A stretch of DNA of 64,000 nt, taken from positions 53,320,001-53,384,000 of the forward strand of contig OZ076412.1 of NCBI GenBank assembly GCA_964187785.1, given 5' to 3'. Below the pieces are notes generated by a model. It searched no databases, was not told the DNA's origin, and worked only from the letters and a program-made list of their open reading frames with translations. A program made the translations under genes and the position numbers. Positions 44,936 to 57,419 of this stretch are shown piece after piece (the first letter of the stretch is position 1; every line of letters begins with the position of its first letter). Source of the DNA: Amphiscolops sp. MND2022 (lineage: Eukaryota).

Positions 44936-45051
44936 GAAATCACCAGTAATGTGGAAATTGTTAATTCAGATAACAAAAAACAAGTTAGTGCAAAGAAAGA
45001 AGAAATCAAAGAATGACTTCAAGGTATCAGTTTGAACATTGCTAGACGGAC

Positions 45052-45087
45052 AACACTGATTGGCTGCTGGGGCAGCCAATCAGTGTT
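45052..45087. terminator. Perfect 16-bp hairpin, Helitron 3'-terminator-like
   Basis: AACACTGATTGGCTGC-tggg-GCAGCCAATCAGTGTT; CTAG at 45097-45100 (followed by T) and at 45042-45045. Confidence 0.75.
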
Positions 45088-46129
45088 CAACAGACTCTAG
45101 TGAGGACATAGTGGAAACTTTTTAAGCGTAGAAAATTTGCATGCATTCCAATGCTCGCGAGTGCTAAGTCACAAACCTCACACCAGTCCCGAAGTGCATG
45201 TTTTACCGTAGCTACCTGTCCAACTTCCTGGACGGGTATAGAACTTTTGAAAAGTGGCATTTCGGCAGATTTTCAAAATCAATCTGAAAAAGCGATAAAA
45301 CTTTTGCAGGAAGGAAATTTCGGCATATTCGGCTTCATCTGATGAGTTTTGTCTGTGTGGAAAAAAGAACGATTTCTTTCAACATGTTTTTCTTAGAGCG
45401 TTGGTCATTGCGGCACTAACTTTTACGGCAACAAACACATGAAAGAACATCAAAGAGATAAACAACAAAGTTTATGGGTTTATAAATGTTACAAAGTTGT
45501 AGTTTCTGACGCTTTTATTTCGTCTTGCACTACAAAGCAATGTGTTGATAATGCAAATCTTCTGTTGCGGGGTGCAGTTTATGTTTTCTCCTCATCATTG
45601 TCATTTGTATACTTCTTTTTAATTGATCAAGATGAATGTACGAATGTGGAGACATATTAATTGTTAAGGTTTTAAAAAACATAATATGTCAAACAACTGA
45701 AGGCAAAGATGATAAATGAACAATCAGTTGTGAATTTTTGATACCAAATGTGTTTTAATTGGGAAATAAGAATTGTTTTTATAATCATCTTGATTTCGTT
45801 ACCAGAATATATGTACTTTCACCGATGTTTTCTTTTGCCACTGTCAACCAATTTGCAAAGGCAAACAAGGCAAACGTAACAATTGTTGAGGGGAGAGAGC
45901 TGCTCCTAGTGAGGCCAATAGGTGTGACATCAACAAAATATTCACGAAGAATTATCAATGAACGTTACAAAATTGAAAGTGTCGAAGAATCCTGTGTGTT
46001 TGTAAGTTTCTTTTTTCAAAAATTCTGCAATTTCTGAAGGTTGCATGTTGTCACACTTTCTGACGACTGTCGACCATTTTGATTCCATAACAAGAATTGA
46101 ATCATTCTTAGAGTTTGCTACTCATTCTT

Positions 46130-54310: not shown

Positions 54311-54691
54311 TGAAACAATTTGAAAGTGTTCACGGTAGTGCTGCAAGTACACTTGAGGTAGCGACAAATTGTAATTGGAAGAAAACCATATCCATTCTGA
54401 AGCCTCGACACTGTAAACTAGGAAATCAAGTTCAGACAAACGACAAAAGGTGGCAATTTCTGAAGTACCGGCGTATGTTCCATCTTCTCTCATTCTACTT
54501 TGGCTTCCATACTCATGAGAGTTGTCGACAAAACAGCCATTTGGTAATATTAAATGGTTGGAACTGTAATTGGTGGTTACTATATCGTCGCATATGACCT
54601 GCCTAATGATGGTGGCGTTCGTTTCGCATCCAGAGAGCAAGACAACAAAGCAATTGAATAAACAATTTCCAGCTCCTGTTACATCTATCAA
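54311..54691 (-). pseudogene. OTU-family cysteine protease domain of the Helitron-like polyprotein
   Basis: IDVTGAGNCLF (OTU G-D-G-N-C-L-F motif with D>A), YAGTSEIATF, terminal EHFQIV His motif. Confidence 0.85.
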
Positions 54692-57419
54692 AAATCCTGG
54701 TTTCAGTCATTCAAAAAATACGGGGATCAGCAGTTTCTCTAAGGTTTCTCCTGGTATGCTATAGAGTGAAAAGTTAACCCCAGCTAGCTGTAAAGTTGTT
54801 GATGATGCTGTTATGTGCCTAGTCTCGTCATTTGCACCTCGTTGTAATGTAACATCAGTGTCGACCAATTGTGGCTCTGGCGATGTAACGTGTGTATGTC
54901 CTGAAAGAAATGCGCTGTATCAGACTACGGAACCGTTTGGATAGTTTTTTCAGCATACTTTCTTTGTTAAATCTGGTTGACAATGAATTTGTGTTAGATT
55001 AGATGCAATTTGCATTAGATTAGATGCAATAAACACAGGATGTTAAATATCATTTTGTTTCCCATGTCAATGACTGAGTTTGCTTCCTTAATAACTTGCT
55101 GATTTTGTTGAAACTTGAATTTTGAATGAAATATCCTTCATGTAAGTCTGAAAAATGTAACTGATAAATTCCTTGTTCAATCATTTTCACTGATACTCCT
55201 CGATACTCCTTCACAAAGATAGTATGATGAGCATTTGTAGGAAGGAGTTTATTTTTATCCTAATCTTTCGTATATTAAAAGTGTTGTGGAAAACGAAATT
55301 TTTCCCGAAGATCCGTATCAAAAACAAGAAAAGACTGAACTGTTATTGATTTTGATTTTCCTACAAACTTTGCCTCGTATATTTGATTGGTTAGATTTAG
55401 TGCCAGTATTCAAATAGACTGTAGAGCTCCGTGAAAAAAGCTAAAATTACTGATCAGTCCTGGTAGCATAAATTGTTCAAACATAAATACTTTTTAGAAC
55501 GGTGCGATACATTATCAAGTTTCGTGTCATCCTTTATACTTAAATTAATCGTTGGTAGCTGTAGAAAAATTTGACTGTTGCGAAGATAATTTTTCAAAAC
55601 GGTGACCAATCAACGTTTGTTCAAACAACTCGCGTCATTATTTAAATTTTATATTTAGAAATCTGAGACGCTTTTGTGATGTTCAAGTGGACGTTTTTGT
55701 TATAAAATATTTTAGAACGCCGTGTTTTTGAAAAATTCTTCATTCAGTATGTTAATTTTTTACCAGATGTATGAGTTGCGTTATGCTAAAAACAGCTACT
55801 GGAAAAAAATGTTGAAGCTATTTTAAAAAAGCTGTTTTTAATATATGGTAGTTACGTTGTTAACCCTGGAAAGAACATATATAGCATGGAACTTGACTAA
55901 GATTACTGTAAGATGTTCATGACCATTTCAAACCAAGTAACAATAATGGTAATGCAAGATTTACAGCTGATGTGTATTGATCATTGAAATTGTTATGTTT
56001 ATGATTTTGACCAGCTGAAAGTACCCAGAGTTTTTCTTTTACCTTTTGGATAGTGTATAAACGGTCTATTGAAATATAAGATATAATCGGAACATTTTGG
56101 TAAGTTTTTCCAGAAATGCTAGAAATATTTGACTTTCAGAAGAATAGTTTTTACAAAACAAGGTTAAGAAATTTGACAACTGATTAATGTAGCCGCTGTT
56201 TCCTCAACGCTTTTATCAGTCCTGTTATGAAAAGTGTGAAAGTGGATGTCACTCCCTCCTAGTGTCCTAAAAAACATTTTGAATTTGTCTGAAAACACTG
56301 GTTGGTTGTCAATTAGGAAACGTGTAGGCCACCTGTGGCTTGGATAGAGACAGTGTACTCAAATAGAGAGCGATCGACTCTTTTTAGATGACTATCACCG
56401 ATAATCTTGTAACTTGCCATTTTTATTAGCTTGAAATGCTCTGAAAAACGTACATGTATTGACGACATGTTCCAGCTTGAGGAATAGACAGAAAAAACTT
56501 AGCATCAAATGGGATAAAAGGAAATTAACTGCTGAAGTGTCTTGTAAGATTTTAATTTCGTATAAAATAAAAGACTTCTTTTTAAAACGGAGAATAAGTA
56601 AAAAAAACCTTGATTATCTTCTTTCTTGTAATAGTTCATCCGATTTCAAGAGTATTTGTGATAACACGATTGAGTTCCGCCTATAGTGTTGTAGACTATT
56701 TTGAAGAGCATCTGTTATGATTCTTGATTGTTTCTATAGTGTTGTAGTTTTCTTTGTTGGTAAATGACCTAAACAGAAAAAGAAACATGACACTAACTGA
56801 ATAAAAACATACTACACTGAACAACACAAACAGCATGCAGCACAGCACGAACAACAAACAAAGCAGCGCAAAATGGCATGTATTTTCCAATTTCAGACCC
56901 ACACGCTACATACTCGCACCCCAAGACAATCAAAAATCAGACCATCACAACACAGAACCGCAGAAAACAGACAAGCTCATTTTAAAACACACTTAAAGAA
57001 AGACACTTCCTAACGGAAAGCATGTACAAACAAAAGTAGACGCAGTTCGCAGAAAACATGGATAAATTGACTGAATTAATAATTTTTAGATAACAAAACT
57101 TAGCTTGACATGTTTGTTCATGGCAACACGTTTTTGCAGTTGAGAATTTCGTCTTGAGAATTCTTGCTTTTTTGAATCTCGATAGTTAGTTCTTGACTCA
57201 TATGATGTTGATCTTGGAAATGTTGAAAAAATCTTGTAGAAAGTCGAATTTGAAAATAATGAATTATATGAAATAAGCCTCTTGAAGACAATCTTGAAAA
57301 TCTTCATTACTTCTTCCTGATGCAGTTGGAGTCGAAGACAAAGAGCTGCTGATCCTGTATAAATAAAAACGAAACTAAAATTGTTAGTTGTCCTGTGAAA
57401 CCTAAAGCAGAGACCTCTT

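Follow-up and report, generated by a model that had tools for sequence, protein, structure and literature searches.

Which kind of mobile element encodes, in one long reading frame, a protease, an HUH Rep domain, a PIF1-like helicase and, at its very end, a nuclease domain of the GIY-YIG type, and is such an architecture an oddity or a norm? The question is raised by a decayed polyprotein gene on the minus strand of a 64,000-nucleotide stretch of DNA from Amphiscolops sp. MND2022 (G000:C4:53320001-53384000, hereafter the window), which belongs to a eukaryotic host assembly of 1.07 Gb with ~38% G+C. The original prediction, made from the letters of the window, placed a Helitron-like rolling-circle element at 45042-54900. 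Our analysis indicates that positions 41733-57790 very probably hold a dead copy, ~16 kb long, of an autonomous rolling-circle transposon of the Helitron-like type, from a lineage in which Rep and helicase are followed by a GIY-YIG domain that would provide an extra nick; the 9.9 kb delimited originally turned out to be its coding core only. In the following, fetched loci and protein relatives carry L- and P-numbers, and the chromosomes of the host assembly (G000) C-numbers.

A decayed polyprotein and its intact relatives

The decayed open reading frame (ORF), a pseudogene, occupies 45942-54890 on the minus strand, with its terminal stop at 45942-45944. In a tblastn comparison with the window, the 2,589-residue protein of the closest intact relative, L026, whose Rep is 68% identical to that of the window, gave one collinear series of ten segments. 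The series leads from residue 4 to residue 2588 of L026, or from 54883 to 45954 in the window, and passes through the frames -3, -3, -2, -1, -3, -1, -2, -1, -3 and -2. All of the minus-strand pieces from which a single polyprotein had been rebuilt by the original prediction are present and collinear with L026. Decay of the window ORF amounts to at least eight frame changes and 16 in-frame stops, with both copies of an internal duplication counted.

This duplication, originally put at 1.41 kb, is real. Self-comparison showed that a unit of 1,413 bp, which takes in a pre-helicase domain and the beginning of the helicase, stands twice in tandem at 47465-50293 (minus strand): 47465-48800 equals 48878-50213 over 1,336 nt at 99.03% identity, with no gaps and an offset of 1413, and in addition 48801-48879 equals 50215-50293. 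An orthologous contig from another, related public assembly (L059) is collinear with window positions 57078-40001 at 93-95% identity, the flank beyond the element included, and contains a single copy of the unit. As L059 shares both the element and its flank, while the unit stands there only once, the insertion is old, and the duplication is the younger event.

Domains were assigned with Pfam, run on the window pieces and on six intact paralogues, with profiles, and with a 22-sequence full-length alignment from which the conservation of motifs was read. On the window pieces alone, Pfam found Helitron_like_N above its cut-off on 50617-51753 (E 1.6e-7) and PIF1 weakly; OTU and GIY-YIG were not found on these pieces. 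All six intact paralogues matched both PIF1 (E 4e-12 to 3e-5) and Helitron_like_N. Together, profiles, Pfam and alignments bear out the predicted succession of OTU protease, Cys/His clusters, HUH Rep and PIF1.

The predicted OTU cysteine-protease domain (GAGNCLF ... EHFQIV) lies at 54196-54691 on the minus strand. In its alignment (A3), D43, G46, G48, C50, L51, F52 and H162 are invariant, and with them the Cys and His motifs, and a profile built from the N-termini of the window, L026, L028 and L032 matches human OTUD3 (4bou, E 1.8e-6) and also nairovirus OTUs. With Pfam OTU, L032 reached 23.1 bits at a cut-off of 23.3. Three Cys/His clusters, predicted to be of the zinc type, are kept in 21-22 of the 22 divergent relatives and correspond to those of the original prediction (CAKC...CNNC, CPWGC..., CLAH...CSKH). 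The first (CxxC ... CxxC; 53950-54100, minus strand) corresponds to C319/C322/C362/C365 of L026 and is kept in 21 of the 22; the third (CLAH ... CPQSECNVAVCSKH; 52049-52230, minus strand), conserved in 21-22, lies just upstream of Rep and corresponds to C952, H955, C970, C975, C983, C988 and C993.

The HUH Y2 Rep domain follows at 50440-51753 (minus strand), with the motifs FFTLTCN, PHIHYL and ARYITKYAAG; it is this domain that the Helitron_like_N match covers. Conserved across the family are motif 1 (TxTCN), the HUH motif (PHIH), an extra H/C cluster within Rep, RYxxKY and the Walker A and B motifs, with PHIH and RYxxKY (nearly) invariant in the 22 relatives. A Rep profile gave no match to PDB sequences, Helraiser included. 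A word-based protein search with the window Rep piece returned two fragments only.

The PIF1-like helicase core is located at 46731-47760 (minus strand), with VVEEIGML as its Walker B motif; Pfam matches it weakly in the window and with E 1.7e-9 in L026. EEIGML had been singled out as atypical, but (D/E)E in Walker B is the family norm, so EEIGML is ordinary for the lineage. Between Rep and helicase the family has a conserved domain of ~430 residues (L026 1560-1990) with the signature FLIHLLLSMGxFxTE, which the window contains twice through the duplication (47761-48369 and 49174-49782, minus strand). Its structure was predicted with a pLDDT of 89. A Foldseek search with the model gave nothing below E 1, and the profile of the domain had only a chance-level match to PDB sequences. 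The best structural match of the model, obtained with VIA-align, was to residues 782-916 of the Helraiser transposase (Z 5.4), which is suggestive, though no proof, of kinship.

Judged by its sequences, the ORF of this lineage is single and intronless, encodes 2,200-2,850 residues and has the order protease, three Cys/His clusters, Rep, ~430-residue domain, PIF1 and GIY-YIG. Intact versions are at hand in the host genome, where the Rep piece 50617-51753 yielded at least 110 matches, dozens of them in uninterrupted frames of 2,200-2,850 codons; seven full copies (L026-L032) were fetched and their ORFs read. The sequencing runs on record, four from a single sample, include none marked as RNA. 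The family copies, many of them intact, are concentrated in megabase islands at C1:70.5-76.5 Mb, C2:102-103.9 Mb (a chromosome end) and C3:2.4-3.9 Mb.

The C-terminal GIY-YIG domain and its distribution

The last part of the window ORF (45942-46400, minus strand) is a degenerate, SLX1-type GIY-YIG-like domain, recognized by profile matching and interrupted by stops at 46157, 46130 and 46124. A profile built only from relatives with canonical residues matches the window piece 46158-46730 with E 2e-14, L026 with E 3e-17 and L032 with E 3e-20. Pfam GIY-YIG (PF01541) did not match the window piece or its closest intact paralogues; it lies above the cut-off in the paralogues L029 (E 3e-6) and L031 (E 1.6e-9) and is among the precomputed annotations of P0003-P0010, so that intact homologues do carry the similarity on which the original prediction depended.

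A profile of eleven C-termini, compared to the PDB, matched SLX1 (4xlg, E 1.1e-13; also 7cq2, 6seh and 7wme) and UPF0213 proteins. In the alignment to SLX1, the conserved arginine of the family corresponds to R36 and the conserved glutamate to position 79. The AlphaFold2 model of the L026 tail has a mean pLDDT of 69, with blocks of 81-88 inside the GIY-YIG core, and its top 11 Foldseek matches are At-HIGLE/SLX1 structures, all with a probability of 1.00, so that the modelled fold, too, resembles that of SLX1. The proposal that a GIY-YIG fold takes the place held in Helentrons by an apurinic endonuclease (APE) therefore stands for the fold, but the window's own segment has lost most of its catalytic residues.

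Among 72 members of the family, the catalytic residues are mostly kept (GIY Tyr in 67, YIG Tyr in 59, Arg in 58, His in 62 and Glu in 62). At the eight positions scored, canonical members have Y, Y, G, R, H, N, W and E. The window has F, H, G, K, M, N and W at the first seven, with the equivalent of the glutamate (MESKW) past the first stop; L026 and L027 have Y, E, D, I, M, N, W and Q, and L032 has F, V, S, S, F, N, W and E. Across the lineage, the pattern of conservation identifies the GIY-YIG domain as a nuclease domain under constraint. Because the catalytic residues are mostly replaced, the version in the window's subfamily is probably a non-catalytic remnant, or pseudo-nuclease.

This subfamily has nevertheless been maintained. 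Over 7,767 nt, L026 and L027, two intact copies on separate chromosomes, are 99.2% identical; their codons differ by 38 synonymous and 19 non-synonymous changes, for a pN/pS of 0.14 (p 3e-13). This ratio indicates that the window's branch was recently under selection, although its nuclease is probably dead, and nuclease activity thus seems dispensable for this branch. Canonical and catalytically degenerate versions of the domain coexist in the host genome, both in intact, apparently selected ORFs. Of the 57 codon differences between L026 and L027, 25 (19 synonymous, 6 non-synonymous) fall into a patch of ~115 codons in Rep (residues 1211-1326), a clustering reminiscent of gene conversion with a more distant copy as the donor.

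The original prediction regarded the architecture as unusual. To see how far it reaches, the Rep profile was scored against 1.84 billion cluster representatives (50%-identity clusters), of which 1,597 matched at E<=1e-3 and 377 at E<=1e-30. Among the best 150 of these 1,597 relatives, the C-terminal domain is present in 54 of the 63 proteins with at least 2,000 residues, which makes it the norm in a large lineage; one prior report of GIY-YIG in such elements exists (PMC11417382). Nine of the long relatives lack GIY-YIG, and no AP endonuclease was found in the four of them that were scanned, all of which end soon after the helicase. Two of the relatives' clusters are named 'predicted GIY-YIG superfamily endonuclease'. 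The N-terminal protease slot is filled by OTU here and by Ulp1/C48 in a metagenomic relative that combines Peptidase_C48, PIF1 and GIY-YIG. In summary, the sequences gathered show the GIY-YIG tail to be the usual layout in a large group of transposons that has scarcely been described.

The relatives come from ENA assemblies and from Logan and JGI metagenomes. One is encoded on a contig that also has an intron-free Nipped-B gene, from which we infer that this contig belongs to a microbial eukaryote, and the ESM Atlas clusters that combine PIF1 and GIY-YIG are labelled mostly as diatoms. This fits the statement in the original prediction that similar motifs occur in microbial eukaryotes. Horizontal transfer, raised there as a consequence, finds no support here: since the subfamilies within the host genome are only 30-68% identical in amino acid sequence, and thus old and highly diversified, we see no sign of recent transfer.

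Ends, interior and surroundings of the element

The whole element (41733-57790, minus strand; ~16.06 kb including the internal duplication) is delimited by ends that are shared by copies with differing flanks. Its 3' end is fixed by the sequence CTAGGT, which is common to four copies and gives way to unrelated flanks beginning with A, G, A and C. The conserved terminal ~100 nt (41733-41832, minus strand) recur across the genome, at other places with 87-93% identity; a first-look search gave 1,815 candidates, all of them starting from query base 1-6. DNA folding predicts two hairpins in this sequence, an 8-bp GGCATGCC hairpin ~50 nt from the 3' end (41783-41802, minus strand) and a small GC hairpin (41748-41761, minus strand), with CTAG ~9 nt further on.

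The 5' terminal region (57700-57790, minus strand) opens with eight T in a row. This T-run plus ATGGGTTGACTAGACGCCCC is common to the window and L023, the locus of a related element, and the flanks upstream of it are unrelated; in five copies the similarity stops at window positions 57780-57793, which fixes the 5' end. Folding of the 5' terminal region revealed no stable hairpin. In L023, the 5' terminal motif is present twice, at 1254-1279 and 1373-1398 (119 nt apart), through a tandem duplication of the 5' end.

These are not the ends of canonical Helitron1 elements (5'-TC...CTRR-3' with A/T insertion): the T-run is followed by ATGGG, with no TC, and the 3' sequence runs on for GT beyond CTAG. 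A terminal inverted repeat seen by eye (CTAGAC...CCCTGTAG) was dropped, as it was not significant in a shuffle test. The tetranucleotide ATTA stands on either side of the element; on the 3' side the flank is where another repeat ends, and a 4-bp duplication is here indistinguishable from chance.

Inside the element, between the ORF and the 3' end, repeat detection found a tandem array with units of 293-296 nt in ~4-4.5 copies (43588-44927). Related copies on C1, C2, C5 and C7 also contain it, and what such copies share downstream of the ORF comprises the array plus a stretch beyond it. The 3' untranslated part further contains a palindrome (45052-45087) with a 16-bp stem and two opposed CCAAT motifs; it lies ~850 nt past the stop of the ORF, has a predicted DNA folding energy of -20.4 kcal/mol (z -7.5) and is 86-89% conserved in related copies. 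In the 5' untranslated part, 57280-57666 contains a microsatellite-like array of 15/30 nt. The stretch is also similar to a long array at C3:17.86-17.90 Mb that repeats regularly with a period of ~1,027 nt, which hints at a satellite that either arose from this element family or was captured by it.

Several repeats surround the element. An unrelated multi-copy repeat (40321-41732; 72-88% identical to more than 20 places) stops exactly at its 3' end. At 57805-58772, 14 nt outside the 5' end, lies a ~1.27-kb repeat. Elsewhere it recurs with a period of ~1.27 kb in tandem arrays, which closely follow the 3' ends of related elements and also run through the regions rich in such elements, C1:73.5-76.5 Mb and C2:103.7-103.9 Mb. 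A high-copy repeat of ~490 nt, similar in size to short interspersed elements, is found at 39342-39838 and is 77-81% identical to many places; a 4.3-kb query that contains it gave 7,343 first-look candidates.

Place among rolling-circle transposons

In an intact, autonomous copy, Rep would nick and become covalently attached at the element ends, PIF1 would unwind the DNA, and movement would proceed by rolling-circle (peel-and-paste) transposition, with the 3' end probably recognized via the conserved terminal ~100 nt and their hairpin. The GIY-YIG domain would most likely add an extra nick, at the target or in the second strand, a role parallel by analogy to that of APE in Helentrons and of GIY-YIG in Penelope-like elements. 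Some points weigh against this picture. What the GIY-YIG domain does is purely an inference, and the decay of the domain in a subfamily still under purifying selection argues that it is not strictly required. The element has no significant terminal inverted repeat, the best complementary block between the termini being 8 nt long with a score of 16 against a shuffle mean of 14.3 and equalled in 122 of 500 shuffles. Finally, the window copy itself is dead, a non-functional pseudogene.

How does this lineage relate to the known groups of Helitron-like elements (HLEs)? In the host genome, the matches of canonical Helitrons to PF14214 span the whole model and score ~205 bits, a middle group scores 65-85 bits, and the GIY-YIG lineage reaches 30-46 bits over model positions ~100-190 only. 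The suspicion of a distinct, poorly characterized lineage thus gains ground. Examples of canonical Helitrons are found at C8:51740782 and C13:53137676, with ORFs of ~1,320 residues, and of the middle group at C1:34711039 and C10:45150934, with ORFs of 2,304 residues; the latter may be true Helentrons.

Canonical Helitrons such as Helraiser (HLE1; PDB 7lcc) share with the window element the order of HUH Y2 Rep and PIF1-like helicase, as well as, near the 3' end, a GC hairpin with CTAG ~9 nt behind it. The window element differs by ~1,000 extra N-terminal residues, the extra ~430-residue domain and the C-terminal nuclease, by the GT after CTAG, and by a T-run in place of TC.

Helentrons (Poulter 2003; Thomas et al. 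2014) are HLE2 elements in which an AP endonuclease is joined to Rep and helicase. They resemble the window element in many ways, with a giant intronless Rep-helicase ORF, a nuclease after the helicase, an OTU domain, internal tandem repeats, a T-string at the boundary and a palindrome near the 3' end. Unlike them, the lineage described here has an SLX1-type GIY-YIG domain rather than APE, OTU within the same ORF and a very divergent Rep; subterminal inverted repeats are not significant, and the 3' palindrome lies ~50 nt from the end. For Helentrons, an AP endonuclease after the helicase, OTU, tandem repeats and T-strings at the boundaries have been described (Thomas et al. 2014, PMC4067079), and for Helitron2 asymmetric terminal inverted repeats plus two hairpins (PMC3627910).

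These comparisons allow the tentative proposal, which we would not yet call probable, that the lineage forms a third major rolling-circle branch beside Helitron1 and Helitron2/Helentron. Its marks would be the fused SLX1-type GIY-YIG nuclease, the ~430-residue domain and the zinc clusters near the N-terminus, and it would occur widely among protists and also in some large genomes; its nuclease would nick the target or the second strand and would have become a pseudo-nuclease in some branches that are still mobile.

A more conservative view, which we consider unlikely, is that the element is a plain member of HLE2 (Helitron2/Helentron), comparable to HelenSM92, with nothing new at the level of the lineage. 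HelenSM92, a moss HLE2 family of Sphagnum magellanicum, is mentioned in one sentence of the HELIANO study (2024) as containing GIY-YIG, and the same study describes OTU upstream of the fused Rep and helicase (RepHel) in HLEs (PMC11417382); literature searches for Helitron with SLX1 or Helentron with GIY-YIG found nothing beyond it, and a centromere-atlas preprint contained both search words in unrelated contexts. The T-run at the 5' end, the internal tandem repeats, OTU and the position of the nuclease after the helicase would also agree with HLE2 (PMC4067079). However, HELIANO treats GIY-YIG as a capture in one moss family, outside its 20 stably included domains (PMC11417382), whereas here it is the norm across hundreds of 50%-identity clusters. 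Compared by description only, HelenSM92 is like the window element in being Helitron-like with RepHel and GIY-YIG, and unlike it in being a single-family capture. Further, DUF6570, said to be specific to HLE2, was absent even at E<=1, no Exo_endo_phos (APE) domain was found in six intact paralogues or four further relatives, and the Rep matches Pfam more weakly than in the other Helitron-like groups of the host genome.

Could the tail instead be a recent, genome-specific capture of a host SLX1 domain by one Helitron family? Helitrons do capture genes (PMC11417382), and cellular SLX1 provides the best matches in both sequence and structure: by profile and predicted fold the domain falls into the subfamily of SLX1 and UPF0213 (YhbQ-like) structure-specific nucleases, and most copies of the element keep Y, Y, R, H, N and E. 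Yet it lacks the RING finger that follows the domain in SLX1 (none was found after the element domain), is fused to a transposase and has become catalytically degenerate in the window's subfamily. The domain also occurs in subfamilies whose Rep sequences are only 30-37% identical, in contigs of unrelated metagenome samples and in the diatom-labelled Atlas clusters, and a recent capture is thus very improbable.

Still less credible is a domesticated host gene family with the window as its pseudogene. The many long intact ORFs, the purifying selection between two copies and the clustering in few regions would fit such a family, but more than 100 copies are dispersed with conserved 5' and 3' ends and unrelated flanks, ~1,800 first-look matches to the 3' end exist, an array lies inside the element, and many copies are decayed. 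Least plausible of all, and hardly worth entertaining, is a chance resemblance of a decayed tail to GIY-YIG, for which the silence of Pfam on the window piece and its closest intact paralogues and the absence of most catalytic residues might speak, given that the canonical-only profile matches the window, L026 and L032 and that the L026 model has the SLX1 fold.

As a Helitron-like transposon with a GIY-YIG tail, the window element bears on the wider question of what use Helentrons make of their extra nuclease. Helitron-like elements reshape genomes and capture genes. GIY-YIG in the slot of APE mirrors the split among retroelements between LINEs (long interspersed nuclear elements), which use APE, and Penelope-like elements, which combine GIY-YIG with reverse transcriptase. 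The likeness, GIY-YIG where a sister group uses APE, may be one of function only, as Penelope-like elements are retroelements and the lineage described here moves, if our reading is right, as a DNA rolling-circle element.

Because the Rep only half-matches the Pfam model, these elements have probably been missed in annotation; tools trained on Helitron1 and Helitron2 profiles probably overlook or misclassify the 16-kb elements, their satellite arrays and the ~1,800 terminal matches. The interest of the locus lies not in the window copy but in the lineage it reveals, which is numerous and partly intact in the host genome and has hardly been described. With canonical and degenerate versions of the domain side by side in one genome, this lineage offers a natural experiment on the function of the nuclease.

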